Source: Macrostomum lignano (taxonomy: Eukaryota). From it: a stretch of 64,000 bases of DNA. Below the pieces are notes generated by a model. The model saw only the letters and a program-made list of their open reading frames with translations. It made no database searches and was not told the DNA's origin. Each line of letters starts with the position of its first letter. Position 1 is the first letter of the stretch. Positions 26,200-64,000 of the stretch are shown here, piece by piece. The stretch covers positions 70,679-134,678 of the forward strand of contig NIVC01001285.1 of the NCBI GenBank assembly GCA_002269645.1. The letters run 5' to 3'. The position numbers and the translations under genes are program-made.

Positions 26200-29100
26200 A
26201 GTGCAAATGTTACTTCCGCTAATGCAATAATCGCTTTCTCAGGTTGTGCAACAATCCAAGTCTCAGCGAGCGCAATAATCTCTTTTTTAGACAGCGCAGT
26301 AATCAGCTTCTCAGCTAGTGCAATAATGCTTGGTTTATTAATAGCAATAATCCTTGATTAATCAAGTGCAATAATCCTTGGTTTATCAAGTGCAATAATC
26401 CTTGGTTTATCAAGTGCAGTAATCTTTGGCTTATAAAGTGCAATAATCCTTGGTTTATCAAGTGCAATAATCCTTTGTTTATCAAGTGCAATAATCCTTG
26501 GTTTATCAAGTGCAATAATCCTTGGTTTATTAAGTGCAATAATCCTTGGTTTATTAAGTGCAATAATCCTTGGTTTATCTAGCGCAGTAATCCTTGGCTT
26601 ATCAGGTGCAATAATCCTTGGTTTATCAAGTGCAATATTTGTTTATCAAGTGCAATAATCCTTGGTTTATCAAGTGAAATAATCCTTGGTTTATCAAGTG
26701 CAATAATCCTTGGCTTATCAACTGCAATAATCCTTGGTTTATCAAGCGCAGTAATCTTTGGCCTATCAAGTGCAATAATCCTTGGTTTATCAAGTGCAGT
26801 AATCCTTGGCCTATCAAGTGCAATAATCCTTGGTTTATCAAGTGCAATAATCCTTGGTTTATCAAGTGTAATAATCCTTGGTTTATCAAGTGCAATAATC
26901 CTTGGCTTATCAACTGCAATAATCCTTGGCTTATCAACTGCAATAATCCTTGGTTTATCAAGTGCAATAATCCTTGGTTTATCAAGCGCAGTAATCCTTG
27001 GCCTATCAAGTGCAATAATCCTTGGCTTATCAAGTGCAATAATCCTTGGTTTATCAAGTGCAATAATCCTTGGTTTATCAAGTGCAGTAATCCTTGGCCT
27101 ATCAAGTGCAATAATCCTTGGTTTGCCAAGAGCAATAATCCTTAGTTTATCGAGTGCAGTAATCCTTAGTTTTCCAAGTGCAGTAATCCTTGGTTTATTA
27201 AGAGCAATAATCCTTGGCTTATCGAGTGCAGTAATCCTTGGTTTGCCAAGAGCAATAATCCTTGGTTTATCAAGTGCAATAATCCTTGGTTTATCAAGTG
27301 CAATAATCCTTGGTTTATCAAGTGCAATAATCCTTGGTTTATCAGATGCAATAATCCTTGGCTTATCAACTGCAATAATCCTTGGTTTATCAAGTGCAAT
27401 AATCCTTGGCTTATCAAGTGCAATAATCCTTGGTTTATCAAGTGCAATAATCCTTGGTTTATCAAGCGCAGTAATCTTTGGCCTATCAAGTGCAATAATC
27501 CTTTGTTTATCAAGTGCAATAATCCTTGGTTTATCAAGTGCAATAATCTTTGGTTTATCAGATGCAATAATCCTTGGCTTATCAACTGCAATAATCATTG
27601 GTTTATCAAGTGCAATAATCCTTGGCTTATCAAGTGCAATAATCCTTGGTTTATCAAGTGCAATAATCCTTGGTTTATCAAGCGCAGTAATTTTTGGCCT
27701 ATCAAGTGCAATAATCCTTGGTTTATCAAGTGCAGTAATCCTTGGCCTATCAAGTGCAATAATCCTTGGTTTATCAAGTGCAATAGTCTTTGGTTTATCG
27801 AGTGCAGTAATCCTTAGTTTTCCAAGTGCAGTAATCCTTGGTTTATTAAGAGCAATAATCCTTGGTTTATCGAGTGGAGTAGTCCTTGGTTTATTAATAT
27901 CAATAATCCTTGAATAATCCAGTGCATTAATCCTTGGCTTATCAAGTGCAACATTCTTTACTATCAAGTGCAATAATCCATGGCTTATCAAGTGCAATAA
28001 TCCTTGGCTTATCAAGTGCAATAATCCTTGGTTTATCAAGTGCAATAATCCTTTGTTTATCAAGTGCAATAATCCTTTGTTTATCAAGTGCAATAATCCT
28101 TTGTTTATCAAGTGCAATAATCCTTGGTTTATCAAGCGCAGTAATCCTTGGCTTATCAAGTGCAATAATCCTTGGTTTATCAAGTGCAATAATCCTTGGT
28201 TTATCAAGTGCAATAATCCTTGGTTTATCAGATGCAATAATCCTTGGCTTATCAACTGCAATAATCCTTGGTTTATCAAGTGCAATAATCCTTGGCTTAT
28301 CAAGTGCAATAATCCTTGGTTTATCAAGTGCAATAATCCTTGGTTTATCAAGCGCAGTAATCTTTGGCCTATCAAGTGCAATAATCCTTTGTTTATCAAG
28401 TGCAATAATCCTTGGTTTATCAAGTGCAATAATCTTTGGTTTATCAGATGCAATAATCCTTGGCTTATCAACTGCAATAATCATTGGTTTATCAAGTGCA
28501 ATAATCCTTGGCTTATCAAGTGCAATAATCCTTGGTTTATCAAGTGCAATAATCCTTGGTTTATCAAGCGCAGTAATTTTTGGCCTATCAAGTGCAATAA
28601 TCCTTGGTTTATCAAGTGCAGTAATCCTTGGCCTATCAAGTGCAATAATCCTTGGTTTATCAAGTGCAATAGTCTTTGGTTTATCGAGTGCAGTAATCCT
28701 TAGTTTTCCAAGTGCAGTAATCCTTGGTTTATTAAGAGCAATAATCCTTGGTTTATCGAGTGGAGTAGTCCTTGGTTTATTAATATCAATAATCCTTGAA
28801 TAATCCAGTGCATTAATCCTTGGCTTATCAAGTGCAACATTCTTTACTATCAAGTGCAATAATCCATGGCTTATCAAGTGCAATAATCCTTGGCTTATCA
28901 AGTGCAATAATCCTTGGTTTATCAAGTGCAATAATCCTTTGTTTATCAAGTGCAATAATCCTTTGTTTATCAAGTGCAATAATCCTTTGTTTATCAAGTG
29001 CAATAATCCTTGGTTTATCAAGCGCAGTAATCCTTGGCTTATCAAGTGCAATAATCCTTGGTTTATCAAGTGCAATAATCCTTGGTTTATCAAGCGCAGT

Positions 29101-31071
29101 AATCTTTGGCCTATCAAGTGCAATAATCCTTGGTTTATCAAGTGCTGTAATCCTTGGCCTATCAAGTGCAATAATCCTTGGTTTATCAAGTGCAATAATC
29201 CTTGGCTTATCAAGTGCAATAATCCTTGGTTTATCAAGTGCAATAATCCTTGGCTTATCAACTGCAATAATCCTTGGCTTATCAACTGCAATAATCCTTG
29301 GTTTATCAAGTGCAATAATCCTTGGTTTATCAAGCGCAGTAATCCTTGGCCTATCAAGTGCAATAATCCTTGGCTTATCAAGTGCAATAATCCTTGGTTT
29401 ATCAAGTGCAATAATCCTTGGTTTATCAAGTGCAGTAATCCTTGGCCTATCAAGTGCAATAATTCTTGGTTTGCCAAGAGCAATAATCCTTAGTTTATCG
29501 AGTGCAGTAATCCTTAGTTTTCCAAGTGCAGTAATCCTTGGTTTATTAAGAGCAATAATCCTTGGCTTATCGAGTGCAGTAATCCTTGGTTTGCCAAGAG
29601 CAATAATCCTTGGTTTATCAAGTGCAATAATCCTTGGTTTATCAAGTGCAATAATCCTTGGTTTATCAAGTGCAATAATCCTTGGTTTATCAGATGCAAT
29701 AATCCTTGGCTTATCAACTGCAATAATCCTTGGTTTATCAAGTGCAATAATCCTTGGCTTATCAAGTGCAATAATCCTTGGTTTATCAAGTGCAATAATC
29801 CTTGGTTTATCAAGCGCAGTAATCTTTGGCCTATCAAGTGCAATAATCCTTTGTTTATCAAGTGCAATAATCCTTGGTTTATCAAGTGCAATAATCTTTG
29901 GTTTATCAGATGCAATAATCCTTGGCTTATCAACTGCAATAATCATTGGTTTATCAAGTGCAATAATCCTTGGCTTATCAAGTGCAATAATCCTTGGTTT
30001 ATCAAGTGCAATAATCCTTGGTTTATCAAGCGCAGTAATTTTTGGCCTATCAAGTGCAATAATCCTTGGTTTATCAAGTGCAGTAATCCTTGGCCTATCA
30101 AGTGCAATAATCCTTGGTTTATCAAGTGCAATAGTCTTTGGTTTATCGAGTGCAGTAATCCTTAGTTTTCCAAGTGCAGTAATCCTTGGTTTATTAAGAG
30201 CAATAATCCTTGGTTTATCGAGTGGAGTAGTCCTTGGTTTATTAATATCAATAATCCTTGAATAATCCAGTGCATTAATCCTTGGCTTATCAAGTGCAAC
30301 ATTCTTTACTATCAAGTGCAATAATCCATGGCTTATCAAGTGCAATAATCCTTGGCTTATCAAGTGCAATAATCCTTGGTTTATCAAGTGCAATAATCCT
30401 TTGTTTATCAAGTGCAATAATCCTTTGTTTATCAAGTGCAATAATCCTTTGTTTATCAAGTGCAATAATCCTTGGTTTATCAAGCGCAGTAATCCTTGGC
30501 TTATCAAGTGCAATAATCCTTGGTTTATCAAGTGCAATAATCCTTGGTTTATCAAGCGCAGTAATCTTTGGCCTATCAAGTGCAATAATCCTTGGTTTAT
30601 CAAGTGCTGTAATCCTTGGCCTATCAAGTGCAATATTCCTTGGTTTATCAAGTGCAATAGTCCTTGGTTTATCGAGTGCAGTAATCCTTGGTTTTCCAAG
30701 TGCAATAATCCTTGGCTTCTTGAGTGCAGTAATCCTTGGTTTGCCAAGAGCAATAGTCCTTGGTTTATCGAGTGCAGTAATCCTTGGTTTTCCAAGTGCA
30801 ATAATCCTTGGTTTATTAATAGCAATAATCCTTGGCTTCTTGAGTGCAGTAATCCTTGGTTTGCCAAGAGCAATAGTCCTTGGTTTATCGAGTGCAGTAA
30901 TCCTTGGTTTTCCAAGTGCAATAATCCTTGGCTTCCTGAGTGCAGTAATCCTTGGTTTGCCAAGAGCAATAGTCCTTGGTTTATCGAGTGCAGTAATCCT
31001 TGGTTTTCCAAGTGCAGTAATCCTTGGTTTATTAATAGCAATAATCCTTGGCTTATCGAGTGCAGTAATCT
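26200..31071. repeat. 24-bp minisatellite (tgcaataatccttggtttatcaag)n, about 200 copies, with higher-order duplications
   Basis: Tandem array; a marker variant block recurs at about 27912, 28798 and 30260. Confidence 0.97.
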
Positions 31072-34159: not shown

Positions 34160-37100
34160 GGAATTGTGTATCTTTTATGTTTGACATGGTGGCTCTTTAA
34201 TGTTTGACATGGTGGCTCTTTTATGTTTGACATTGTGGCTCTTTTATGTTTTGACATTGTGGCTCTTTAGTGTTCGACATGGTGGCTCTTTAATGTTCTT
34301 CATGGTGGCTCTTTTATGTTTTACATGGTGGCTTTTTATGTTTGACATGGTGGCTCTTTAATGTTCTTCATGGTGACTATTTTATGTTCTACATGGTGGC
34401 TCTTTTATGTTCGACATGGTGGCTCTTTTATGTTTGATTCGGGGATTTTTATGTCTGACATGGTGTCTCTTTAATGTTTGACATGGTGGCTCTTTAATGT
34501 TTGACATGGTGGCTCTTTTATGTTTTGACATTGTGGCTCTTTAGTGTTCGACATGGTGGCTCTTTAATGTTCTTCATGGTGGCTCTTTTATGTTTTACAT
34601 GGTGGCTTTTTATGTTCTACATGGTGGCTCTTTTATGTTTGACATGGTGGCTCTTTTATGTTTGATTCGGGGTTTTTTTATGTCTGACATGGTGTCTCCT
34701 TAATGTTTGACATAGTGGCTCTTTAATGTTTGACATGGTGGCTCTTTAATGTTCGACATAGTGGCTCTTTAATATTCCCCCAGATAGCAAGCATCCCCCA
34801 GATAGTAAGCATCCCCCAAATAGGAAGCATTCCCCCTCCCAGATAGCAAGCATCCCCGAGATAGCAAGCATCCCCAAATAGTAAGCATCCACCAGACAAT
34901 AAGTAGCTAGTACAACAATTTCCTTAGCTCTATAGTGGCTCCTTTAAAATTGGCATGACGCTTACTTTTAAGTTTGGAATTGTGTATCTTTTATGTTTGA
35001 CATGGTGGCTCTTTAATGTTTGACATGGTGGCTCTTTTATGTTTGACATTGTGGCTCTTTTATGTTTTGACATTGTGGCTCTTTAGTGTTCGACATGGTG
35101 GCTCTTTAATGTTCTTCATGGTGACTATTTTATGTTTTACATGGTGGCTTTTTATGTTTGACATGGTGGCTCTTTAATGTTCTTCATGGTGACTATTTTA
35201 TGTTCTACATGGTGGCTCTTTTATGTTTTACATGGTGGCTCTTTTATGTTTGATTCGGGGATTTTTATGTCTGACATGGTGTCTCTTTAATGTTTGACAT
35301 GGTGGCTCTTTAATGTTTGACATGGTGGCTCTTTTATGTTTTGACATTGTGGCTCTTTAGTGTTCGACATGGTGGCTCTTTAATGTTCTTCATGGTGGCT
35401 CTTTTATGTTTTACATGGTGGCTTTTTATGTTCTACATGGTGGCTCTTTTATGTTTGACATGGTGGCTCTTTTATGTTTGATTCGGGGTTTTTTTATGTC
35501 TGACATGGTGTCTCCTTAATGTTTGACATAGTGGCTCTTTTATATTTGACATGGTGGCTCTTTAGTGTTTGACATAGTGGCTCTTTTATGTTTGACATGG
35601 TGGCTCTTTAGTGTTTGACATGGTGGCTCGTTAATGTTCGACATGGTGGCTCTTTAATGTTTGACATGGTGGCTCTTTAATGTTCGACATGGTGGCTCTT
35701 TTAGGTTTAACATGGTGGCTCTTTTAGGTTTAACATGGTGGCTCTTTTAGGTTTAACATGGTGGCTCTTAAATGTTCGACATGGTGGCTCTTTAATGTTC
35801 GACATGGTGGCTCTTTAATATTCTTCATGTTATAGCTCTTTCATGTTTGACATGGTGGCTCTTTAATGTTCGAAATGGTGGCTCTTTAATGTTCGAAATG
35901 GTGGCTCTTTAATGTTCGAAATGGTGGCTCTTTAATGTTTGACACAAAGTCACATATATGTTTGACATGGTGGCTCTTTATGTTTGACATGTTGGCTCTT
36001 TTATGTTCGAAATGGTGGCTCTTTTTTGTTCTACATGTTAACTCTTTTTATTTGATACGGTGGCTTTTTTAATGTCTGACATGTTGGCTCTTTTATGTTT
36101 GACATGGTGGCTCTTTAATGTTCGACAAAGTGGCTCCTAAATGTTTGACATAGTGGCTCTTCAATGTTTGACAATGTGGCTTTTGAATGTTTGACATGGT
36201 GGCTCTTTAATGTTTGACATGGTAGCTCTGTTATGTTCGACATGGTGGCTCTTCTAGGTTTGACACGAAGGCTCTTAAATGTTTAACATGGTGGCTCTTT
36301 AATGTTTCACATGGTGGCTCTTTAATGTTTTACATGGTGGCTCTTTTATGTTTAACTTGGTAGCTCTTTGTTATTTTACATGGCAGCTCTTTTATGTTCG
36401 ACATGGTGGCTCTTTAATATTCTTCATGTTATAGCTCTTTCATGTTTGACATGGTGGCTCTTTAATGTTCGAAATGGTGGCTCTTTAATGTTTAACACAA
36501 AGTCACATATATGTTTGACATGGTGGCTCTTAAATGTTTGACATGGTGGCTCTTTATGTTTGACATGTTGGCTCTTTTATGTTTGACATGGTGGCTCTTT
36601 AATGTTTGACATAAAGTCACTTATATGTTTTACATGGTGCCTCCTAAATATTAGACATGGTGGCTCGTTTAGGTTTGACGTGGTAGCTCTTTAATGTTCG
36701 ACATGGTGGCTCTTTAATATTCGATATGTTGGCTCTTTTATGTTTGACATGGTGGCTCGTTTTCGTTCGAAATGGTGGCTCTTTTTTGTTCTACATGGTA
36801 ACTCTTTTATATTTGATACGGTGGCTTTTTTAAAGTCTGACGTGTTGGCTCTTTTATGTTTGACATGGTGGCTCTTTAATGTTCGACAAAGTGGCTCCTA
36901 AATGTTTGACATAGTGGCTCTTTAATGTTTGACAATGTGGCTTTTGAATTTTTGACATGGTGGCTCTTTAATGATAGACATGGTGGCTCTTTTATGTTCG
37001 AAATGGTGGCTCTTTAATGTATAAAATAGTGGCTCTTTTATGTTCGATATGGTGGCTCTTTAATGTTCGAAAAAGTGGCTCCTAAATGTTTGACATAGTG

Positions 37101-37435
37101 GCTCTTTGATGTTCGAAATAGTGGCTCTTTTATGGTCGACATGGTGGCTCTTTAATGTTCGAAATGGTGGCTCTTTAATGGTCGAAATAGTGGCTCTTTT
37201 ATTTTCGACATGGTGGCTCTTTAATTTCGAAATGGTGGCTGTTTAATGTTCGAAATGGTGGCTCTTTTATGTTTGACATAAAGTCACTTATATGTTTTAT
37301 ATGGTGCCTCTTAAATATTAGACATGGTGGCTCGTTTAGGTTTGACATGGTGGCTCTTTAATATTCGATATGTTAGCTCTTTTATGTTCGACATGGTGGC
37401 TCTTCTATGTTTGACATTGCGCTTCTTTTATGTTT
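34160..37435. repeat. 23/24-bp minisatellite (atgtttgacatggtggctcttt[t]a)n, heterogeneous
   Basis: Tandem array inside Helitron copy 2. Confidence 0.95.
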
Positions 37436-46585: not shown

Positions 46586-47313
46586 GCTCCACTGAAATTT
46601 TGTCATTTTTCGCGCATTCACCTACCTGCGTTTGAATCTGGCTGTAGCCTTTGCCAAGTAAAACAAAACTTGCACGTGGCATATCTGTCGATCTGTATTT
46701 CAGCACAAATCTGCTAATACGTTATATTTAGGCTATATAATTATTAGCAATTTCAGAGTGAAGTTTCGGGTATTTGTTTTATTGAATACCTCGTAATACC
46801 TAGGTGCTAATTAAGCTGAATACTCGCCTTGCAGAACTTATTAGAAGACGTCTGTATCCAATGCGGTGACGCAAACTTTTGCCCTAAGACTGTACCTGCT
46901 AAATTTGTCTAGAAGCTGTGAGTGGGGCGCGTTTGCGCTTTTCAAACCTCGATAACGACTTGGAAATAATGCGTAACAGCTTCAGTCTTCTAGTTTCTTC
47001 TTCTGTATTTACCTTCCCCTTCCGTAGAGGTGAATTGAAAACTGTGAATATTGCAAACTGTGGCAAATATTTACTAATCTTGGAAACAATTGAAGCCAAA
47101 TCTAAATTTTTATGATAAGGATAAAGATGTATGAATTGACTTTAAATTCGCATTATCATCTAATCTCAATTATTTATTTTATCAGTTAGGCTAAACAAGG
47201 AGCTGAGATCCAGGATGCTTGCAGCATGAGCTATTATATAGAAAATATCGATTCATATTTTATATCACTCTAAGTTTTGACGCCAAATGAGAATGAATTG
47301 AAACATAGAATTG

Positions 47314-48045
<732 letters not shown>

Positions 48046-49299: not shown

Positions 49300-50181
49300 T
49301 CAATATAGCTCACCGCTAATTGAAAGCAGATGCACCTGCGATGCACCGCCGCAGGTGAACTGACCACCAGTCGTGACGAACTCCGGAGCAACCAGGTAAT
49401 ACGACGGACCGGCCGCGGTGGTAGGCAGCTCTTGCTGGCATTGAGTCACTGGCTTTATCGGAGTGGACATATTGAAGCAGTCGGCAGTGTAGGCACTTGA
49501 GAAATGAATCTGATGTTGCGGATCGTTCTGCTGCTGCTGCTGCTGCTGCTGCTGCACTTCGTTAGGTGAACAGCTGACACTTGAGATATCAATCCCTTCG
49601 GTTGAAAACTGAAGCAGAGCAGAATCGTCAATATTATCGACAGACAATGAAGCTGCTGCTGTTGCTGCTGCTGTTGCACCAGCAGCTGTCCCGTCGTCTT
49701 CGTCGCTTAAAAGCAGATCGGAGAGGTCGCACATCCCAGATGAAGACTCGACAACTGGTCGAGCAGCCGTCATGTTTGATGGTTGAGCCCGCTGTTGAAC
49801 TTGATCGAAGCTGAACTCGCCAACCTCAGCAGCACTATCCGACTCCAGAAGCTTAACAAGATAGGCTATGTAAGTAGAAGCAGTTTTGAGCACTTCAACT
49901 TTGCTCAACTTTCTAGCCTTCTTGCCGTTGTATCGTTTCGGCAGTCGGTCGCGCAGCGTTGCAAAAGTTCGGTTGATGAGCTTCACCCGGTTCCGTTCCC
50001 GTTCGTTGCGCTTCTGCACGGTGCTGGTCTGCGGCTTCTGCACGGCGAACTTGCCGTTGATGAATTGCAGTTTTCTCCGACAGGGCTGGTTGGTGTACGC
50101 CACAGTGATCCTCTGCGATGAACTGCCCGCTTCTCTGCTTGGACTGTCCGTCATAGTAGGCTGACCAAGCTGCTCAGACAT
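49300..50181 (-). CDS. ASCL: Achaete-scute family bHLH transcription factor (ASCa-type basic region); start at 50181 or 50154
   Basis: KRNERERNRVKLINRTFATLRDRLP...KLSKVEVLKTASTYIAYL; single coding exon with a polyQ tail. Confidence 0.93.
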   Translation of the reverse strand: MSEQLGQPTMTDSPSREAGSSSQRITVAYTNQPCRRKLQFINGKFAVQKPQTSTVQKRNERERNRVKLINRTFATLRDRLPKRYNGKKARKLSKVEVLKTASTYIAYLVKLLESDSAAEVGEFSFDQVQQRAQPSNMTAARPVVESSSGMCDLSDLLLSDEDDGTAAGATAAATAAASLSVDNIDDSALLQFSTEGIDISSVSCSPNEVQQQQQQQQQNDPQHQIHFSSAYTADCFNMSTPIKPVTQCQQELPTTAAGPSYYLVAPEFVTTGGQFTCGGASQVHLLSISGELY

Positions 50182-50235
50182 GACAGATCGAAAGTATTCT
50201 ATTTCTTTTGTTGAGGCTCTTTGACACTCCACGAA

Positions 50236-52029: not shown

Positions 52030-52670
52030 CTATACCCTTCCCTGCACCCTCCCCTTCGCCCTCCCCTACACCATAGTCTTCACCCTCTCTGTACCCTTCC
52101 CCTGCACCCTCCCCTGCACCCTCTCCTGCACTCTTGCTTCAACCTTCTCTGCACCCTCCCCTGCGCCCTCCCCTACACCCTAGCCTTCACCTTCTCTGCA
52201 CCCTCCCCTGCGCCCTCCCCTACACCCTAGCCTTCACCTTCTCTGCACCCTCCCCTACGCCCTCTCCTGCATCCTTTGCTTCAACCTCCTTTGCACCCTC
52301 CCTTGCCCCCTCTCCTGCACCCTTTGCTTCAACCTCCTTTGCACCCTCCCTTGCCCCCTCTCCTGCACCCTTTGCTTCAACCTCCTTTGCACCCTCCCTT
52401 GCCCCCTCTCCTGCACCCTTTGCTTCAACCTCCTTTGCACCCTCCCTTGCCCCCTCTCCTGCACCCTTTGCTTCAACCTCCTTTGCACCCTCCCTTGCCC
52501 CTTCTCCTGCACCCTTTGCTTCAACCTTCTCTGCAGCCTCCCCTACTCCCTCTCCTGCATCCCCTCTTGCACCCTCTGCTTCAACCTCCTTTGCACCCTA
52601 CCTTGCCCCTTCTCCTGCACCCTCTCCTACACCTTCTTCTGCACCCTCCCCTGAACCCGCCCCTTACGCT
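52030..52670. repeat. C/T-rich minisatellite with a 48-bp core (tgcaccctcccttgccccctctcctgcaccctttgcttcaacctcctt)
   Basis: Tandem array with degenerate flanks. Confidence 0.9.
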
Positions 52671-53309
52671 TCAAACTCTATTCTGTCACGAGTAGTTGAA
52701 AAATAGTTTTTTCTTAACGAAAAATTCAGCGATAAAACACAACAATAAAAAACCCAGAATGCGCCTAAGCTAAGTAGTGTCAGAAGAAAATTAAGTTAAT
52801 ACGAGATGTTTAAAGTTACTTAGGCGAGCGAGACTGCAGGCTGGGTAAAGCTCCTATAGGCATAAAGCAAGATGGCATTAGTTAGTACTAGAAAGATAAA
52901 TAAACTATTTCTGTGAGAGTACAGTACGCATGCGCCTGCGCATACACGCACGCAGACAGGCAGATAGCTAGATAGTTGATGCACCAGCTACTCCATAATC
53001 ACAATGCACATTTCTCCTAGTTAGCAAGCAGGTAAGAGAGAAATATGCTTAACCCAGGTAAAAGCCAACACGCAAAGGCTGCAGCAAATTTTGCCAAGAT
53101 ATTATAATAGAACGACACTAAACTAGATTATCTGTCAGTGAATCAGCTGGCTAAAAACCATTAGCAAGCGCACATACCATATATATAATTATCTGAATCC
53201 CCGTTAGAGCTTTGCTTCAGAAACAGTGGATGAAAATTGGAAACAAGTACTCGCATACCCGGTTGACAACTGCAAAAAAACGACTTTTCTAAAAAAAACA
53301 AAATTAAAA

Positions 53310-56300
53310 ATGGCCGAATCTGCAGAAGGAGAAGGTAATTATTCTTTTATCAATGCTGCTTTGGCTTTCTAGAATAAATATTAAAACCAATCTAGATCAA
53401 GAGTGCAGTTGTTAGCTCAAGTTTGTTCCAAAATATTTGGCGCGAAAAGTTACACTCTGTTTTTGGCGCCACTTTGCAAACTGAAAACGGTGCCCCATAT
53501 TACATTCTGTTTTTGGCGCCACTTTGCAAACTGAAATTGGCACCCCATATTACACTCTGTTTTTGGCGCCACTTTGCAAACTGAAATTGGCGCCCCATAT
53601 TACACTCTGTTTTTGGCGCCACTTTACAAACTGAAATCGGCGCCCCATATTACATTCTGTTTTTGGCGCCACTTTGCAAACTGAAATCTGCACCCCATAT
53701 TATATTCTGTTTTTGGCGCCACTTTGCAAACTGAAATCTGCACCCCATATTATATTCTGTTTTTGGCGCCACTTTGCAAACTGAAATCTGCACCCCATAT
53801 TACATTCTTTTTTTGGCGCCACTTTGCAAACTGAAATTGGCGCCCCATATTACACTCTGTTTTTGGCGCCACTTTGCAAACTGAAAACGGCGCCCCATAT
53901 TACATTCTTTTTTTGGCGCCACTTTGCAAACTGAAATCGGCGCCCCATATTACACTCTGTTTTTGGCGCCACTTTGCAAACTGAAATCTGCGCCCCATAT
54001 TACATTCTTTTTTGGCGCCACTTTGCAAACTGAAATCTGCACCCCATATTACATTTTGCTTTTGGCGCCACTTTGCAAACTGAAATCTGCACCCCATATT
54101 ACACTCTGTTTTTGGCGCCACTTTGCAAACTGAAATCTGCACCCCATATTACATTTTGCTTTTGGCGCCACTTTGCAAACTGAAATCTGCACCCCATATT
54201 ACACTCTGTTTGGCGCTGTCACCAACTTCACAAGTTGGGGACGATAAATCTCGGTAGTGTGACCTACACGTAGTTATCAATAAATCTAACTGTCGGTGCC
54301 AATAGTTGCTCTTTCCTGATGCTTCGATTCAGACGTTCTCGAGACGCCCGCCGAAATTGATCAGCCGCTGTTGTACGAGTCCTTCAATCTGCCCGACATT
54401 CAATGCTCAGTGCCCCAGTCTGCGTCTTCTTCGACCGGCGTTGAGCGTGAAAACACCGAATCTGCTGACATCGCGCCGCGGCGCCGATTCCAGTCAGAGT
54501 TTCAGCGCCACGCCAGCCTGCGCGCCGTCATCGAGGCCACGCATCGTCGACTGGCCGACGGCTTCGACGAGATGCAGCTGGCGATGAGCTCTGCCGACGA
54601 GATGCCGATGCCGGTGCCTTGGAGACTCGGGGACGTCGACATCGGAGCTCAATTTGAGTCGACAGCGACGCTTCGAGCTGAGCAGCGCCTGCTGGTGTTC
54701 GGCGGCCCCACCAGCGGGAAATCCGGTCTGATCAATCGTCTCCTAGGAGAAGACATCATGCCAATTGGAGTTGGCAGCCTGCTGCTATGCCAGGCCGGCT
54801 TGACGCATCTGCACTTCAGCGAGCGGCCGTTTGTCCGATTCTCGGGCTCAGCGTTCCCGAACCAGCCGCCTGTCGAGCTGGACCCAAGCAGACCGTTGGC
54901 CGGCCAGGTTCGAACCTTCTTGCTTAGCGACGACTTCGAGCCGCAACGGTCGGCTTGGGCATCGATGGACGGCTGCGCGCTGGAGATCGGTGCACCAATG
55001 GAGCTCATGAGGTGCCAGCTGGCTTTCGTGGAGGTGCCTAGCGATTGCGTTGATCATCTAGTCAGGGAGAGGCTGCTTCGAGAGCTGGCTAGATCGAAGA
55101 ATCACACTGTGGTGTACGTTATCGACAGTCAGAAGGGATTTTGCAATCAGGTGAGGTTTCTGGGATTGTTGTCCATTTTAAATTGATGCTTTAGGTGTAT
55201 ATTGGCAATCCGCTGGCTTCCGCTGGGTGATGACATTCATCGAGGCCTTTACTGTATAATCCGAAGAAATTCAAGCTTGGTTATAGTGCTATAGTATATA
55301 GTGCTTGGTTTTCTGTGGGCAAAATAACCGCGCTAAAACCAGTTTTGTTGCGTGGATCTCAGATACTTGGAATCCAAACTTTTTTCTATACGAAACACTT
55401 CCCAGGACCGAGAATTCTTGTTATTCCTTCGGGCTAATCGACCAGAGGATCGAGTCATCTACATAGTAAACAAAGTCGACTACGATCCAGAAGCCGAGTT
55501 CATGGACTGCAACACGGACGATGAAGATTCGAACGACGAAGATGAGCAATCCGACGAGATCTGCTCGGTGCATCGCAGCGGCGAGGAGACTCAGCAGCGG
55601 AAACTTCGTCTGGTGAATGACCAACTTCTGCGCTACAGGCTGGTGGATCCACGATCCGGTGTCGACGGTCGAGCTCGAAGCGTCTTCCCAATTTCTTTGA
55701 TTCGTCTCCGTGTACCCCTGACCGCTTCTGGCTCTAAAAGTCTAGTGCACAGGCTGAATAGGCAGTACCGAGTTCAGTACGGCGAGCTGCAGGAGGCTCT
55801 GTTCTCCAACCTGTTGGAGACGAGCAGTGCAGGCGTCGACGGCGCTATCGGGCTGTTGTTCCTCAAGGCCTCGTTGGCTTTCGATGCTTTTGCCAGGGAC
55901 CCAGCTAAGGAGGAAGCGGAGTCCAGAGGACCTGCGGCCAAGGATTTGGTCCGAATTGCGGTGTCCGAGGCGAGGGACGCCATCGAGCAGCTGAAGAGGA
56001 AGCTGAAGAACGACATAACAAAGCTGCATCAGGTAATAAATTCGTTTTTGATATTTCCTGATTTTAAGACCTGGTTTGTTTTGTAAATGACTTGTCCGTT
56101 GAATGAAACAACGTTGTTTTGGGGGTGACTTGTTGATAGCATATTCTGTCTCGGATGCCTACACACCGTATATTTATTTTAAGACAGAAACATCCCTTTT
56201 GGAGTTGAGCACACCCTTTTCTGAAGGTAAGCGAGTCTTGGAGAGGTCAGATATACACCCTTAACTTAGACAAAATCCCCTATAGTTCTTAAGGTTAACA

Positions 56301-59248
56301 GACTCTACATAAGGTGGGCACCATTTAATCCAGCAGAAAGGTTTGCAATCCCATCAATAATCCACTCCTAATCGCAGGCCTGCGAAGAGTCGATCATCTC
56401 CGAATGCGGCAATCTGGAGTTCGGACCTCTCCGACTTCACAATCGCATTAGAAATAACGAAGTTGAACAACAGTACCGAACTCAGTTGCACAATTTCGCT
56501 CTCCATCTGCTCAATAGCGAGGTGTCCTCAAGATTAGTGGATTGCTTAGCAAATCTCAGGTCCAGCCTGGCTCTGCTAATTGGCAAAATGCAGAGCCAGT
56601 TGACTAAAGAGTCCACTGAGGCTGGCGGCTTCGTTGACAGTCAGTGGAACGAAGTGGTCAGGCTGCAGACTCAGGAGGCTCAGTGCGTGGCTGCCAGGAT
56701 GGATCAGCTGTCCATCGAGTGGGAGGGCGATTTCAAGTTTTTCACCTGGATGCGGAGACTGGTGGCCAAGAAAGGTCAAGCCAGTGGCGGAGCAGTCTTC
56801 AGCACCTCCGAGTGGAAGGTTTGTCAATTAGCTTTATTGTTTCGTTAAGCCTGTTAATCCCTTTCATATTGCTGAAAGATCTATCAACTTATATCGACAT
56901 GTCAGAAGATTTAACCGATCACGTAGCAGGATTATGTGCCATTGGGGATAGAACGAAGAGTCAAAAGAGAGATAAATTGAGGAAGAATAGAATCAAGTTT
57001 CAGAAAATAGAATGAAATGTCAGATGATATAATTAATAATCAGATAGTAGACTAAAGTGTTAGAAGATGTGCAAAGTCAGAGAATCTGACGATTGAATAA
57101 AGGTTTTATAGAATACAATGAATTTTTAGAGATTAGATAGAACGACATTTCACAAAAAATAAAGACAAAAATTAAAGGACAGAATAAGATTTAGTGAACA
57201 AAGACTTTAGCCATCTTCAAATTTGATTCACGCAGGAATCGGTGGCGAAGGACTTTTACCAGCATATCAACCTGTCTGCGGTAGTGAAGAAGTTCTTCGC
57301 TAATCTCGAAGCAAAACTGCTACAAACCGAGCGCCGTCTCCAAGGCCTGGCCGCATCAAGACAGCGCTGCGGCACTCGCCTTCGACGACTGCTTCGCAAA
57401 AATCATCCGGGCGCTTGCGCAGCCTGGCGCGCGGCCCAGCGTTGCCTGGCAACGGCTGATGCATTGCGCAACGCTCAACGCTTCGGCCTAGTCGATTTGG
57501 GAGAAGTCCTCTACGACGGGCGTCTGGGATGTCAGCGGGCTTTGGTCAGAGAAGACTTCGGGGGCAGCTGCGTGCCGGGACTTCAAGCGGCAACGGTGCT
57601 TCGACCGGACGGTCATCTTGGTAGCATCTGCAGCTTGTACCTCGGTCAGCGACGACAAAGGCGCTGGCTGCTGCCTAATGAGTGGACTGTCGCTCCGATT
57701 TTGGTGTCACTAACCAGAGAAGCCTGTCGAATGTGCGTTTTGCATAACGCTTACACTTGCTCGCTGGCGGATGCCTTGCAAAATGGCAAATACTCGAATA
57801 AGCAGGCTTTCTGGCTGTTGCAGAGTCTGCTTCAACTGTGCCAGATATGCGCAGCAGCGGCGGCCGCGGAGAGCGGAACCAACGGCGACGATGAAGGTGG
57901 CTGCGAGCAGTGCAGCTGGTTGACCTGCGACACTGTGCGGGTGAGTCACTATTTGGTCATTCACACTCCGAAATCATCTTCAAGTTCTTTCTGTTTTTTT
58001 TTCAGCACGAGCTATTCGTACTTACTCTGCTGTGATTTTCCGGGTTGTGTTTACTTTAGCTAAGATAGATTTTTTAGTATTATGCCTCTACTGCTACGGC
58101 GTGTAAGAAAGTAGTATTATTAGGAAAAATAATTGTAATTTAAAAGAAAATTTCAAACTGTTTATCATCGGTACGGCTAAAAGAAAAAGCAGCACAGTTG
58201 TGTAACAACACAGCTGCTGTCTGTCAGGCTTCCATGTTCGGCCTGAATAATTTGAAGCTTGGCTTGAACCCCCAAAGCACAGATAGTGTACATTCCTGAC
58301 GATTAGTATGTCTGGACCGCTGTACACCCCGTTTGAGCGCGTGTAAGATTGCGTGCCAGTGGTACATGTACATTATTGGGGCTCTTGCGTGTGCTCAAGA
58401 GTCAGCGGAGTGGACGGAAATGCCATCAGCGCTGGTTGTGAGATGACTTTCGCAAGTGTTGCGCCAGGGTATCGAAAACCTTTCTGCAATTATTTTTTCC
58501 TAATTAAATATCTATTCAACTAAAAACATTCCAGGTGCGATTCGAAGCAGGCTTCGCCACGGCCATGATCGACTGCCTCGACGAGCCGCTTCAGGTGACG
58601 AGATCGAAAAAGCGCCAACAGCAACAGCAGCAGCAGCAACAGCCGCAACAGCACCAGCATGCGTTGAACCGCCCGACTTTAGTAGCTCAACAATCCACCA
58701 CTGTTCAGCACTCACCATTCCGTCAGATCAAGGAAGCCTACAAGCGGTCTCGATCGGTAGACGCCCTCGGAGATGGACCGTCATCGGCTGGTGCGACGTC
58801 CGCTGTAGCGACAGAGCCGGGCATCGGGGTGGAGACTCCGTGGGAACGACGCGAACTGGATAACTTCCTGCTTCTGGCTCTGATGATTCTGTGTCGTCGA
58901 AGGTTGGACTACATCGATGGGCAGTTAATTGACTGGTTCAGCGTGTCATCGTCTGGAATTTCGCAACAACAACAACAACATCAGCTAGTTTCTGAAGTAG
59001 CATTGCAAGAGCATCAGGTCGGATCGCTTAGTGAGCTGCTCGCAGGCGTCGTGAAGGGTCAGGAGCGTTCGGGCCACAACTATTCGACGGCCCTGGTGAT
59101 ACCGGAGCCGTGGGAGACCGTCTCCAGGCTGCTTCTCGGTTGCTCTGACCAACAGGCGGAGACAGCAACTGCTGAGGCCGGTGAAAGTCGATGGGATCTG
59201 ATTTCCGCCTTTGTTGAAAACGGGCTGAAGAATGAGCTGGCAAAGTAG
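53310..59248 (+). CDS. DSTYK-like protein: dynamin-type G domain, helical region and degenerate kinase (exons 53310-53334, 54333-55150, 55406-56032, 56378-56818, 57236-57940, unresolved 57941-58534, 58535-59248)
   Basis: Exons 1-5 join in frame. P-loop GGPTSGKS and G4 NKVD are present. LRRLLRKNHP...DLGEVLYDGRLG aligns with DSTYK RVRKDHAP...KLGQELGRGQYG, from memory. Confidence 0.75.
53450..54212. repeat. 50-bp minisatellite (ttttggcgccactttgcaaactgaaatctgcaccccatattacattctgt), about 15 copies; intron 1
   Basis: Period 50 (53465, 53515, 53565). Confidence 0.96.
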
Positions 59249-59867
59249 ATCTCCTGTTGATGTTTAAGCGTTACTGCGACTGAAGAATATCGGTTGACTT
59301 TGGCTAAGTCATTTCAGTTTGGTCTCCGTTTGGTCTGGCCACTTCAACTACAAAGTAAACTTGAACTTATGTTTACTTTTTTATCATTCAATTGTTCTCA
59401 ATATTTGCAACTTTTTACTCTTTTTTTCTGACCTTATCTGTGTTTAAAGCCCAAAAGAGTACCTAAACTACATTTCTGCTCTCTCTCCAACCGCTCTGCA
59501 ACCTCTCTCCCGCCTGTATCCAGTCTCTATCCAGCCTCTCTCCAGCCTCTCTCCAGCCTCTCTCCAGCCTCTCTCCAGCCTCTCCCTAACCCAGTTGTAG
59601 TTTTGCAAAAGTGATTTGCTCAATAAAAATGCTAATGCATCACATCAGTAAATTTCGTATTAATTAAACATAAGGTTCCAAAAACGTGTATGGAATTTAT
59701 TTTGTACATTTTTATCCACGATATATTATTGACTAATAAAGAATCAATCTACGAGCGTAATAATACTTCGTTAAAAATAAACTTCCCGAAAGTGTTCTTT
59801 TAACGTATCAGGAGATACTTCTGTTTAATAGAACTATTGGGCTCGTAGCACTTTAGATAACTACGGT

Positions 59868-60300
59868 CAAATCTGCTGTAGATCTACTGAGCTCTCAAGC
59901 TAGCTGTAAGATCCACTATCGAATCTGCTGTAGATCTACTGAGCTTTCGGGCTAGCTGTAAGATCTGCTATCGAATCTGCTGTAGGTCTACTGAGCTCTC
60001 GGGCTAGCTGTAAGATCTGCCATCAAATCTGCTGTAGGTCTACTGAGCTCTCAAGCTAGCTGTAAGATCTACTATCGAATCTGCTGTAGATCTACTGAGC
60101 TCTCGGGCTAGCTGTAAGATCTGCCATCAAATCTGCTGTAGGTCTACTGAGCTCTCGGGCTAGCTGTAAGATCTGCTATCGAATCTGCTGTAGATCTACT
60201 GAGCTCTCTGGCTAGCTGTAAGATCTGCTATCGAATCTGCTGTAGATCTACTGAGCTCTCTGGCTAGCTGTAAGATCTGCTATCGAATCTGCTGTAGATA
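59868..60300. repeat. 52-bp minisatellite, about 8 copies, rich in short palindromes (AGATCT, GAGCTC, GCTAGC)
   Basis: Period 52 (59921 to 59973). Confidence 0.95.
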
Positions 60301-60626
60301 TTTTTTCAAGGATGCTGTCATACTAACTGCTATAAAATTTCCAAATTCTGAGGGAATGCTTCTGATCGCTTACTATGCAGGCTCGACATTTTAGCCAGCC
60401 AACCAAATTGCAGCTCACCATAGGGGCCATTCAATCTTGTATCTCTTTGGAAACAAAAGCAAAAACCAATCGGCGGAACCAGCCAATGTTCTAGTAGTTG
60501 GTTTAGATAGCAAAAAGCTAATATCACTATTCTTACATGGCGGCAAGAGCCTCTTAATACTGCTTTGAATAGTTATAACAAACATTTTCCCAGATAAGGT
60601 TAAAGTTTCACAATAGCCACAACGCC

Positions 60627-63600
60627 ATGTCGACTCTCAGCAGAGACAAGCAGATCTGGTGGGCCCTGTTGCTGCTTGCTGTGACTTTCCTTACTCAACA
60701 ATGTGCGGCGATTAAATGGCTGTAAGTAGACTGACTGAATCATGCATTAATTTATTTCTACATGATCTGCATCAAACAGATGGCATCGTATTTAGAGCTG
60801 GTACCTAGGGAATACCAAAGGAAATTACAAGTAACTTGGTGCGCGTACTGAGAAGTGCTTAAGCATTAAAGGAAAAACCATGTCGTCTAGAGATGTTTCC
60901 GGGTGTTTATAGAGCACTATTGAAGTGTGCAGAACAATGCCAAGGGTAACTAGAGCAGTACCAATGTTTTTAAAGTAGTAGGTGCCAAGTAAAGTCACTC
61001 CAAAGTTGTCAATTAAAGTGCCGTGTTGCCTATAGCGGTATCCAGGTGTTCACATAAGTATCGTCTCAAGATGCCTGGAGAAGAAGTTTAAAGATGTCTA
61101 GAGAAGTCTGATGATGCTTAGAGAAGTCTGAAGATGTCTATAGAAGTCTGAAGATGTCTATAGAAGTCTGAAAATGTCTAGAGAAGTCTGAAGATGTATA
61201 GAGAAATCTGATGATGTCTAAAGGAGTCTGAAGATGTCTAGAGAAGTTTTAAGATGTCTAGAAAAGTCTAAATATGTCTAGAGAAGTCTAAATATGTCTA
61301 GAGAAGACTGAATATGTCTAGAGAAGTCTAAGGATGTCTAGAGACGTCTGAGAATGTCTAGAGAAGACTGAAGATGTCTACAAAAGTTGGAAGATGTCTA
61401 GAGAAGTTTAAAGATGTCTAATACAGTCTAAAGATGTCTAGAGAAGTCTAGAGATGTCTATAGTAGCCTGAAAATGTCTAGAGAAGCCTGACTATGTCTA
61501 GAGATGTCTGAAGATGTCGTGAGAAGTCCAAATGTGGTTTCAAAAGTGCTAACTTGCTTGGCCGTGCTTTGAAGAGACTCAAGTTGGTCTCTAAAAAGAT
61601 TATATATCGAGTATTTACCAACTTTCTTAAAAATTCTTAGGCAGACGTCGAAAGCGAAAATGGCATTTTGGGGTCATCAAACAGTGGCACAACAATTAAA
61701 AAAGCCTGAAAGAGGCTGCTTAACTCATATAAAATACTTTATGTCCTGGTCATGAAATATAACTATTTGTTAACTAATTGATGCCAACTGAGGACATTGA
61801 AATAACCACAATCTTCTTTTGGCGGCACTCGTTCGCCAGCCAGCTAGCTACAAGAAAAAGGTATCTGCAGAAAGAATTTCTTCTAGAAGAGAGGAGAATT
61901 CGGATTCAGAATGGATTTCTATTTTTTATTATCGGCACTCAATGCTTGCGACTTTCAACCAGAGTGGACCCTCAGTCCATTGCATTGCATAGCGCAGCTT
62001 TATGGGACCTAGACAGACCGAAATCTGTTATTTACAACAATCCATAGGAGTTTGACCCTCACCAGTATTTTACCGAAAAATCCCCGATCTGCGCTCTCAG
62101 CTCGCAGTCCCCCAAGGCCCCCCAAGTATTATTGCTTTGTTTGCGGCGAGAGAAACGCGCAAGTTTTTGTTGCCAAGAGTCAAGAGAGAGAGGGACAGCG
62201 GCAGAGCCAGACTGGGAACGGATACTAAAATTTAATGACCCCTCGGCTCGGGTACAATACGAATACGACACGCCGAAAAAAGAGGAGAGGAGAGTGAACG
62301 GACCAGCGCGGCGTTTTTATAAGAAGCCTCTACCTGTGCCATCTGTTCCCAAATCGGGGGTGGAGGCATGCGCGGTGTCTGGCAAACCTGGTAATGGGAG
62401 GAAGCTAAGGGAAGAAGGACAGACCCGCAGACACCAATATCCCACCCTGTGTCATAAAGTCTCAGACCCCTTTAGTGTCGAGTTCGATGTTTAGAGGTGG
62501 GCAATAAATCCCAAACACGAGGGTGCCTCCCAGTTCCAACTTGGATGGTTTTTGGTACAACTTACGCTCGCGCACATCCTGAACTGATGCGATTCAGGAA
62601 TTCAGCCTTGGCTGCACCCGGGCAATAAGCATTAAATGTTGATTTACAATCCCAATTTAAGTTCTATAATAGGCTGTCTATATTTGTAGCAGCCTTTTAG
62701 AGATACAACGCATCGACTTGTTTTGTTTTGAGAGCGAAAGCTATAATATTCTTTGGGCTTTTCCTTGGACTTGGACTGTCTGGTCGGTCCCTCCCAGTTT
62801 CTAGTGCAACGGAAACAGACGCGCCGCATCGGCAAGGAATTTACAGCCTTTCTCTTTGTTGTTCGGGCGGCTTTTCATGTGGTGGTAGAGTTTTAGTTTT
62901 TTTTAAAAAGAAAGCTTCATGCTGCGTGTAGTCAAACTGTTCGTAATAAACGCTAGTACTGTAGACGTCTGGGTTCCTGAAAACAACTGGGTTACTGCAA
63001 ATTCAGGCTCAATCAAGTTCCAATAGGAATATGCGGAACTATGGCTGGCAAGAAAATGATACTTTTAAATCCTTAGTAGATTTGTTATTAATTAAAGTGT
63101 AACAAAGCAGATCGATGTGCCAATTCAAAAAGGTAGATCAAAGTCTTCTGGCAACACAAGCAAGCCCGTGCAACGCTCCGATTAGGAAATGACGTTATCC
63201 ATCGGTGCAATGTAAAAGCACCCTTTTGCCATCGAAATCTCAAGTCTCAACAATTAAAATAGATCGATGTTAACTTTCAGGGGCTAGTGCATTAATGTAC
63301 TTTTAATAACGCCAATGAAAATATAATTTTAACACAAAAATTTGTACCATTCTAGTTAATACCATTGAAAGTTAAAAGGTAGTTAAAAAAACTTTTTTAC
63401 TCACTTCTTCAGCGGGCTAAACAACTACAGCCAGCTCACGGAAGGCCGACTCCAAGCCGAGTTCTTCTGCAACCGGATGCGTCAGCTGGACGTGCTGAAC
63501 CGGAAGCAGTTCAAATTCTGCAAAAAATTCGCCGTAGAAAGGTCAGACGCTGGGCGCGTGAGTGCCGTGATCAAGTCGCGCACATCACGGTGGAAACTTG

Positions 63601-63679
63601 CCAAAAGCAGTTTCGACACTTCGATGGGACTGCAGCGTGCTCAGACACGTGCCTGAGCTGGCGCCCGAGCTCAAGTCGC
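60627..63679 (+). CDS. WNT11: Wnt11-like ligand, 5' part (exons 60627-60721 and 63413-63679); continues beyond the window; two apparent 1-nt deletions in exon 2
   Basis: Signal peptide ending CAAIKWL at a phase-2 intron. Then FCNRMRQLDVLNRKQFKFC..., TVETCQKQFRH and RWDCSVLRHVPELAPELKS in successive frames, ending at a phase-1 donor typical of Wnt genes. Confidence 0.8.
61070..61520. repeat. 20-bp minisatellite (tctagagaagtctgaagatg), about 22 diverged copies; Wnt intron 1
   Basis: Tandem array, seen directly. Confidence 0.92.
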
Positions 63680-63750
63680 GTGAGTTAAAGCGTTACGGGG
63701 ATCAAAAATATCACCATTTTGACATTTTGATAATTTGATCCTAACTTTGT

Positions 63751-63870
63751 GGCGACTCCATAGTCATTGGATTGAACAGTGGTACGCAGCCTTCAGATGC
63801 GCTGGGCAATAGCTGCGGCTGAGCTGTTGGTTTCACATCTGGCCCAATTGGGGCAGGTGTAATCAATAAT
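63751..63870 (+). mobile_element. 3' fragment of SINE family A; Wnt intron 2
   Basis: tacgcagccttcagat...gcaatagctgcggctgagctg...cacatctggcccaattg matches the reverse complement of 11130-11250. Confidence 0.8.
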
Positions 63871-64000
63871 TCATATTATTATTTTGTTAGGAAGTCAGTT
63901 GGACCGCTTTGTCTGCGATGTTTCCGTGTCATAAATAGATCGCTAGGTTTTAGCACCATGAAGTCATGCATACATCAACAGATTGTTAAAAACAACAGTA

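Follow-up and report, generated by a model that had tools for sequence, protein, structure and literature searches.

A putative hydrolysis-impaired dynamin-like scaffold of the DSTYK family in the flatworm Macrostomum lignano

A six-exon gene lies on the + strand at positions 53310-59248 of the window analysed here, a stretch of 64,000 nucleotides from Macrostomum lignano (contig NIVC01001285.1, positions 70,679 to 134,678), and encodes a product of 1109 aa. This protein belongs to the DSTYK lineage by its front two thirds, is without the kinase that gives the family its name, and departs from an active dynamin-like GTPase at two of the four G motifs. On balance, the gene appears to be a lineage-specific and highly divergent member of the animal DSTYK family, whose product would be a nucleotide-loaded scaffold with an eroded kinase domain; confidence in this combined reading is moderate.

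The region is eukaryotic, with multiple open frames on the + strand and stop-rich stretches between them, and the gene model joins these frames at GT-AG sites throughout. Its ATG starts at 53310 and the last base of its stop codon is 59248, exactly the borders proposed in a first-pass annotation of the sequence, and all strings quoted in that annotation were recovered at their places in the 1109-aa product. The NCBI model BOX15_Mlig014929g3 (P0001), an M. lignano hypothetical protein, shares 97% identity with this product and, being near-identical, served as a stand-in for the spliced window model in part of the analyses. An alternative acceptor of exon 3 at 55343 was rejected, as it adds 21 aa, disrupts the alignment with every relative, and is not the one used by P0001. 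The exons and the repeat in the first intron are as follows:

53310-53334, + strand: exon 1, start codon and aa 1-8 plus one base; GT donor at 53335, matching the P0001 N-terminus; maps 100% onto the second genomic copy of the gene (L001)
53450-54211, no strand: tandem repeat of 50 bp in 15 copies, inside intron 1, non-coding; Tandem Repeats Finder score 1265; a source of spurious open reading frames (ORFs)
54333-55150, + strand: exon 2, aa 9-281, carrying the N-terminal helix and the initial two thirds of the GTPase domain with G1, switch I and G3; bounded in frame by an AG acceptor and a GT donor
55406-56032, + strand: exon 3, aa 282-490, running from the last part of the GTPase domain (with G4) through an acidic loop into the first stalk helices; acceptor as in P0001, and the string NQDREFLLFL aligns without gaps with the family and with Der/EngA
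56378-56818, + strand: exon 4, aa 491-637, stalk/trunk helices with a low-confidence tip
57236-57940, + strand: exon 5, aa 638-872, completing the stalk helices and holding the initial half of the C-terminal region, whose fold is unproven
58535-59248, + strand: exon 6, aa 873-1109, poly-Q and low-complexity insert, conserved C-terminal helices and stop codon; blocks ELDNFLLLALMIL and the last helix are common to the paralogue P0003

Relationship to DSTYK

Word-indexed homologue searches with the full protein, or with a piece free of low complexity, had only Macrostomum copies among the matches listed, and a search with the family alignment listed Macrostomum copies and one unrelated kinase. 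When 1.84 billion representatives were searched exhaustively with phmmer, 35 matches emerged. At their head stood two more paralogue groups from Macrostomum, namely Mlig003289 (P0003, 38% identical over aa 66-843) and Mlig031520 (P0004 and P0046), so that three paralogues with only 21-38% pairwise identity are at hand. The best match outside Macrostomum was Nematostella DSTYK (E 3e-18, query aa 125-656), and further matches were proteins of 850-960 residues from hemichordates, amphioxus, Lingula and nemerteans that are annotated as DSTYK or DSTYK-like; E-values for the Nematostella, hemichordate, amphioxus and Lingula proteins ranged from 3e-18 to 1e-5. A few prokaryote-type dynamin-like proteins (DLPs) from metagenomes were also found among the 35 matches, and no other flatworm was among them. 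Pfam detected Dynamin_N in 33 and a C-terminal Pkinase domain in 13 of 35 proteins (the query and 34 matches).

All matches fell within aa ~60-840 of the query, and those outside Macrostomum ended by ~aa 656. The GTPase segment alone scored 50-72 bits against DSTYK-like proteins of other phyla; judged by this comparison, the similarity of the P-loop region is not due to chance. The stalk alone (aa 409-655) matched aa 320-569 of Nematostella DSTYK with 29.9 bits, while the C-terminal 410 residues matched only the paralogue P0003 (24 bits). The motifs GxxNxGKS, YVIDG, NKVD and EWKxxVA are common to the protein and the family. The last of these was noted by eye and is not a curated motif; it reads EWKESVA here (56810-57247, + strand, aa 635-641, with the exon 4/5 junction between EWK and ESVA), a string of the same type is present in P0003, Nematostella, Lingula, amphioxus and Glandiceps (alignment A2), and human DSTYK has EWKRKVA.

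A neighbour-joining tree of 579 columns placed the three Macrostomum paralogues together (100%) and set metazoan DSTYK, human included, and the Macrostomum clade apart from prokaryote-type DLPs with 74% bootstrap and a sparse outgroup; Macrostomum forms a long branch with no resolved position within the metazoan clade. The relationship to DSTYK that the first-pass annotation had proposed is borne out by the phmmer match and the stalk score, the tree being compatible with it, and is supported by sequence comparison only through the N-terminal two thirds, that is the dynamin-like GTPase and the stalk. Invertebrate DSTYK and DSTYK-like proteins resemble the flatworm protein in these two homologous parts, in overall length and in domain order. 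Their G2 (PCT[S/A]R) and G3 (DxPG) motifs are mostly canonical and their C-terminus is in most cases a kinase or kinase-like domain seen by Pfam or hhalign, whereas the Macrostomum protein has non-canonical G2 and G3, no recognisable kinase, and poly-Q and low-complexity inserts.

The dynamin-like module and its human counterpart

Motif states were read from an alignment of the N-terminal part:

54701-54724, + strand: G1 or P-loop, aa 132-139, GGPTSGKS, intact, fits GxxxxGK[ST]; invertebrates GxxN[S/C]GKS, Mlig003289 GGKGSGKS, Mlig031520 GAPTSGKS, human GQDCNVKC
54791-54793, + strand: G2 or switch I position, Gln162 in place of the family's catalytic Thr, PCT[S/A]R of invertebrates reading CQAG; Mlig003289 CNG, Mlig031520 EDKG, human CKLR
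55031-55042, + strand: G3 or switch II, aa 242-245, EVPS in place of DxPG of invertebrates (Asp to Glu, Gly to Ser); Mlig003289 EIPG, Mlig031520 EVPE, human VAPC
55469-55480, + strand: G4, aa 303-306, NKVD, intact, fits [N/T]KxD; invertebrates NK[V/I][D/E], Mlig003289 NKVD, Mlig031520 NKID, human PKLG

Residues G132, G137 and K138 of the P-loop are invariant in a family alignment of 19 sequences. All three Macrostomum paralogue groups retain G1 and G4 and have altered G2 and G3. The G3 Asp is replaced by Glu in each of them, with Gly additionally replaced by Ser in the window protein, while the position of the G2 Thr is Gln in the window protein, Asn in Mlig003289 and Lys in human DSTYK, and lies within EDKG in Mlig031520. 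The retention of G1 and G4, together with a G3 Glu common to the three groups, therefore suggests selection for nucleotide binding and not for the canonical hydrolysis machinery. In the dynamin superfamily, sensing of Mg2+ and of the gamma-phosphate is linked to hydrolysis by the Thr of switch I together with the Asp and Gly of switch II, and hydrolysis requires both the G2 Thr and the G3 Gly. With the G2 Thr and both the Asp and Gly of G3 replaced, canonical hydrolysis is thus unlikely. The first-pass annotation had described an intact GTPase P-loop; this holds for G1 and G4, and its remark that G3 is altered was correct, but the GTPase as a whole is not intact, the loss of the switch I threonine having been found only on alignment.

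The tandem arrangement of P0046 (Mlig031520g1, 1953 aa, encoded outside the window) is a separate observation: two DSTYK-like modules follow each other, the first with the intact P-loop GAPTSGKS, and the second with no P-loop by pattern search, GCSRRLQFGVINRLL sitting at the expected place by eye. This layout recalls fused or paired bacterial dynamin-like proteins and could also be a merged gene model.

Structure prediction with AlphaFold2 (AF2) was not usable from the single sequence (predicted local distance difference test score, pLDDT, of 37), but with the 35-sequence alignment it reached a predicted template modelling score (pTM) of 0.62, with aa 52-735 mostly at pLDDT 65-92 and exon 2 at 65-91. 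The model comprises a GTPase domain and long helical bundles. A Foldseek search of the PDB with the model returned the bacterial dynamin-like protein BDLP (2j69) as the best match to aa 52-735 (E 4.6e-16, 745 columns, target-normalised TM-score 0.57), with IniA, mitofusin 1 and 2, SynDLP, Fzo1, EHD proteins and dynamins also matching (IniA and mitofusin 1 at E ~1e-10). Residues ~52-735 are thus predicted to form a dynamin-like module of the BDLP/mitofusin type, composed of a GTPase domain and a long helical stalk. BDLP (2j68/2j69), IniA and the mitofusins share weak sequence similarity with the flatworm protein at the P-loop. In these active GTPases, G2 and G3 are canonical and a membrane paddle or transmembrane (TM) segments are present; the flatworm protein, in contrast, has altered G2 and G3, no TM segment, and an additional C-terminal region of ~390 residues.

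Between confident stalk helices, pLDDT drops below 50 at aa 568-581 and 586-628, and the latter segment includes a candidate membrane-contact loop:

56729-56776, + strand: aromatic/basic patch DFKFFTWMRRLVAKKG, aa 608-623

Its place at the tip of the trunk is assumed from the BDLP paddle. Because no TM segment was found anywhere in the protein (maximum Kyte-Doolittle mean over 19 residues of 1.48), membrane contact by this candidate is a guess by analogy with that paddle.

Human DSTYK (NP_056190.1 / Q6XUX3, confirmed by exact-sequence look-up) scores 126 bits for Pkinase and has no Dynamin_N in Pfam. When its N-terminal 640 residues were used as the query, aa 100-630 aligned with aa 57-616 of Nematostella DSTYK at 58 bits, which identifies the N-terminal part of the human protein as the same dynamin-like module in diverged form. 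A direct BLASTP comparison of human DSTYK and the flatworm protein was not significant (E 0.16 at the P-loop); the two belong to one family by transitive homology, and in each of them one of two ancestral enzymatic modules has degenerated. Unlike the flatworm protein, human DSTYK combines degenerate G1-G4 motifs with a strong kinase, which has been reported to be active, e.g. on STING Ser366 (PMC11933320); its kinase residues are discussed in PMC9573974. The picture of vertebrate DSTYK given in the first-pass annotation, a degenerate dynamin-like N-terminus with an active kinase, agrees with this. The mirror image drawn there holds on the human side, where the GTPase is dead and the kinase is live, but not fully on the flatworm side, where the GTPase is half-dead and the kinase unrecognisable or absent.

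Invertebrate DSTYKs mostly have canonical G motifs, and their kinase or kinase-like C-terminus is often catalytically degenerate. Since they mostly keep both halves, Macrostomum and vertebrates appear to represent two different degenerations of a two-domain ancestor. In Nematostella (P0005), Tubulanus (P0065) and hemichordates (P0009-P0021), several kinase domains were below or barely at Pfam detection and without DFG (e.g. INTCKG), and some hemichordate paralogues have altered G2 or G3 (DVPS, DLPA, DLPS). The hemichordate copies lie on one scaffold with near-consecutive accession numbers, which suggests tandem arrays. Degeneration of either half seems to be recurrent in the DSTYK family.

The C-terminal region, selection and rival readings

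The elements of the C-terminal region that were set against a kinase, and its poly-Q run, are:

57506-57529, + strand: VLYDGRLG, aa 728-735, taken as a lost Gly-rich loop in the first-pass annotation
57587-57601, + strand: AATVL, aa 755-759, taken there as the position of the VAIK lysine
57683-57853, + strand: aa 787-843 (TVAPILVSL...CVLHNAYTCSLADALQ...LLQSLLQLCQICAA), the only segment with a weak kinase profile match (beta4 to alphaE), by hhalign
58616-58660, + strand: poly-Q run, aa 900-914

Poly-A and further stretches of low complexity are also found in the region. Neither HRD nor DFG is present as a string in aa 720-1109, nor are there motifs for the catalytic residues (beta3 Lys, HRD Asp, catalytic-loop Asn, DFG Asp) in this part; in a tentative alignment, CSWLTCDTVRV stands at the catalytic loop and IDC at the DFG position. 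Both hhalign and MAFFT set VLYDGRLG against beta1-beta2 of DSTYK kinases, without significance, and AF2 places a beta-hairpin at aa 723-742 (pLDDT ~50-60). The proposed place of the VAIK lysine at AATVL is not supported: MAFFT puts beta3 at RALVRED, in an alignment that, like all others of this region, is not statistically reliable.

Searches for a kinase were negative at several levels. Pfam gave no Pkinase or PK_Tyr_Ser-Thr at E <= 10, and at the same threshold no kinase was found among all PDB sequences, which include thousands of kinases, either by phmmer with two C-terminal pieces or with a profile of the Macrostomum paralogues. A family-wide profile matched FGFR, RIPK1 and BRAF at ~1e-18, a signal that stems from the other species. 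When a DSTYK-like kinase hidden Markov model (HMM) was used, the top 25 scores all belonged to shuffled sequences and no real Macrostomum C-terminus was among them. A six-frame HMM scan of 52700-64000 revealed no hidden or downstream kinase exon, its best, non-significant match being again aa 787-843.

With the stalk trimmed, hhalign scored 17.9 against 12.6 +/- 2.1 for column shuffles, a value reached by 4 of 150 shuffles (empirical p ~0.03), at a probability of 0.3%. A stronger signal (26.4 against 13.3 +/- 2.2, 0 of 150 shuffles) was discarded, because the profile took in the last stalk helix, whose homology was already established. Positive controls came from the DSTYK C-termini of Nematostella and Tubulanus, which escape Pfam and were yet recognised by hhalign at 99.6-99.8% probability; the method is therefore sensitive enough for moderate degeneration. 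A greedy hhalign alignment was collinear over 313 columns. In the AF2 model, the C-terminal elements follow the order beta-hairpin, short helices, long helix, two short strands, long helices, which is compatible with a kinase but proves nothing. The first-pass call of a dead kinase is thus right in that no kinase catalytic motif is present, while a kinase fold was not shown by Pfam, PDB searches, the family HMM, AF2 or Foldseek; if the region is a kinase remnant, its sequence marks it as certainly dead. Blocks of the region are conserved with the paralogue P0003. Since none of the three Macrostomum groups has a recognisable kinase and no kinase-bearing M. lignano DSTYK was found by the phmmer search, the loss of the kinase probably predates the expansion of the paralogues.

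The M. lignano genome contains several near-identical copies of the gene. One of them, L001 (GenBank NIVC01000410.1), shares all six exons with the window copy at ~99% nucleotide identity, as well as its upstream basic helix-loop-helix (bHLH) neighbour, so that the duplication covers at least these two genes. Over codons 1-1064, 18 synonymous and 8 non-synonymous changes separate the window copy from L001 by Nei-Gojobori counting, resulting in an overall ratio of non-synonymous to synonymous rates (dN/dS) of 0.14 (p 1.3e-6 against neutrality), from which it follows that the gene is functional. Split by region, the ratio comes to 0.07 in aa 1-720 and to 0.31 in aa 721-1064, the latter not significantly below 1 (p 0.067); purifying selection on the gene is clear in the N-terminal two thirds and less clear at the C-terminus. 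A 1-bp difference in exon 6 (GGG at window ~59112, GG at L001 ~9900) shifts the final 45 codons of L001, as in the public model P0001. The window frame is the one with the C-terminal helix resembling P0003, and the C-terminus of P0001 is for this reason probably a frameshifted copy or an assembly indel. The two loci can also be told apart by copy-specific insertions or changes in repeat number: intron 5 measures 594 bp in the window (57941-58534) and 1914 bp in L001 (7408-9321), and intron 1 measures 998 bp in the window and 776 bp in L001 (222 bp shorter).

I found that the evidence speaks with different force to the four rival readings. A decaying, non-functional copy in a repeat-rich and recently duplicated genome is barely credible: the window is dense with satellites, near-identical copies exist and L001 carries the 1-bp frameshift near its 3' end, but the 1109-codon frame is unbroken over six exons with canonical splice sites, G1 and G4 are retained across old paralogues, and the excess of synonymous changes and resulting dN/dS speak against a pseudogene, a reading that was rejected on the dN/dS. 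It is also very unlikely that the protein is a generic eukaryotic BDLP-like DLP that resembles DSTYK only via the common Dynamin_N domain. Such a protein would account for the similarity being strongest in the GTPase domain, for the prokaryote-type DLPs among the 35 matches, and for the limited support (74%) of the metazoan clade in a simple tree with a long Macrostomum branch; however, all of the best matches outside Macrostomum are DSTYK or DSTYK-like and rank above every prokaryote-type DLP, the match continues through ~250 stalk residues where prokaryote-type DLPs have none, and YVIDG and EWKxxVA are shared with DSTYK. The version of the first-pass annotation, a working, membrane-acting dynamin-like GTPase with a folded pseudokinase scaffold as a true mirror image of vertebrate DSTYK, is unlikely. 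Intact G1 and G4, a BDLP/mitofusin-like fold predicted with good confidence, a Glu in G3 of all three paralogues that could still coordinate Mg2+, the weak collinear profile match to beta4-alphaE, and a human DSTYK that truly pairs degenerate G1-G4 with a strong kinase are in line with it. Against it stand the changes of the G2 Thr to Gln and of the G3 Gly to Ser, where the different readings of G2 in each of the three paralogues argue against a conserved substitute for Thr, as well as a kinase fold that no method has demonstrated and the absence of a TM segment or clear paddle.

The nature of the C-terminus is the weakest link of the preferred reading. An outright loss of the kinase domain, with the C-terminal ~390 residues being an unrelated, partly disordered and Macrostomum-specific extension on a DSTYK-type dynamin-like module, seems somewhat improbable but deserves serious consideration. 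It would fit a kinase undetected by any sequence method, the trimmed hhalign probability of 0.3% next to controls that Pfam likewise misses and hhalign finds, the low AF2 confidence, the poly-Q, poly-A and other low-complexity stretches, and the dN/dS of 0.31; yet the region sits exactly where relatives have their kinase and has a similar core length without its inserts, the greedy alignment is collinear, the beta4-alphaE segment outscores 146 of 150 shuffles, and the paralogue-conserved blocks coincide with expected kinase core elements. From its position, the collinear weak alignment and these blocks, I lean slightly towards an eroded kinase over a replacement. A dynamin-like scaffold that is impaired in hydrolysis and whose former kinase domain is eroded is judged the reading with a somewhat better than even claim on this sequence evidence, and several points weigh against it. 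The protein falls just short of the Pfam gathering score for Dynamin_N (21.4-26.8 bits, with 23.4 bits for exon 2, against a cut-off of 27, which the paralogue P0003 exceeds with 35.4 bits), the case for nucleotide binding consists of two motifs only, G1 and G4, and the G3 Glu might still support Mg2+ coordination and some hydrolysis. The missing TM segment and a C-terminal dN/dS not significantly below 1 count here too, as do an AF2 pLDDT below 50 for aa 741-1093 and the lack of a kinase among the top 50 Foldseek matches in the PDB; kinase ancestry rests on position and on p ~0.03, and the region could equally be a replacement domain.

Possible role and surroundings

As a hydrolysis-impaired scaffold, the protein would still bind guanine nucleotide via its P-loop (G1) and the guanine specificity of G4, while the loss of the G2 Thr and the G3 Asp and Gly would leave no canonical cycle of GTP hydrolysis and switching. 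It may thus act as a nucleotide-loaded, possibly self-assembling scaffold and not as a mechanochemical enzyme, and the C-terminal ~390 residues, at the place of a kinase of the tyrosine kinase-like (TKL) type, would be a heavily eroded, non-catalytic remnant and at most an interaction domain. A precedent for such a role is fission-yeast Mmc1, in which a dynamin-related fold is kept as a non-enzymatic, self-associating scaffold (bioRxiv 10.1101/2023.10.03.560745). Mmc1 is reported to be without the residues for GTP binding or hydrolysis, whereas the flatworm protein keeps G1 and G4; the two are likened by role and not by sequence comparison.

Taken alone, the gene is of modest consequence, being a lineage-specific, uncharacterised branch of a known family in one flatworm, and it is a probable addition to the small set of dynamin-like pseudoenzymes. 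For the family, the analysis shows the poorly described N-terminal ~600 residues of DSTYK to be dynamin-like and of BDLP/mitofusin type. Automatic domain annotations already allow DSTYK to be recognised as a fusion of a dynamin-like GTPase with a kinase; a literature search found no paper whose title or abstract ties DSTYK to dynamin or GTPase, and both words co-occur in some full texts whose contents were not assessed. Three natural states of one two-domain protein are now at hand, with G motifs canonical in most invertebrate members examined, degenerate in human, and half degenerate in Macrostomum, where the kinase is gone or unrecognisable, and they could help to find out which of nucleotide binding, hydrolysis and kinase activity the roles of DSTYK require. 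Such roles have been reported at endolysosomal membranes (PMC11933320, PMC6981171); DSTYK also features in the literature on hereditary spastic paraplegia, and mutation of it leads to vertebral malformations in zebrafish (PMC6981171). A bolder and doubtful proposal is that the ancestral animal DSTYK was a working BDLP/mitofusin-type GTPase fused to a TKL kinase, and that vertebrates and Macrostomum lost the function of opposite halves, leaving Macrostomum with a GTP-binding, hydrolysis-dead scaffold and a structurally preserved pseudokinase. If true, the ancestral protein would have had a membrane-associated design of G domain plus kinase, comparable in its logic to ROCO/LRRK proteins, and the role of the non-kinase half of DSTYK could be approached through the flatworm genes as natural separation-of-function alleles.

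A search of the 64-kb window with Rfam gave no match. Other genes in it include an uninterrupted ORF of 1816 aa on the - strand at 268-5718, encoding a giant ankyrin-repeat protein (Ank_2 616 bits, 25 stretches), two divergently oriented genes with DUF7802 in both (8514-9590, - strand; 10513-12364, + strand), and, upstream of the DSTYK-like gene, the bHLH transcription-factor gene at 49300-50232 on the - strand (HLH 47 bits). The content of satellites is very high, with many at 14718-48037 and others at 52034-52664, 53450-54211, 59870-60299 and 61082-61528. The larger arrays include repeats of 23 bp in 160 copies (20389-24064), 24 bp in 198 copies (26317-31070), 23 bp in 141 copies (34171-37435) and 42 bp in 36 copies (15518-17040), as well as (ATTG)x182 (47310-48037). 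A C-rich repeat of 12/48/96 bp just upstream of the DSTYK-like gene yields long spurious ORFs, as does the 50-bp repeat of intron 1.

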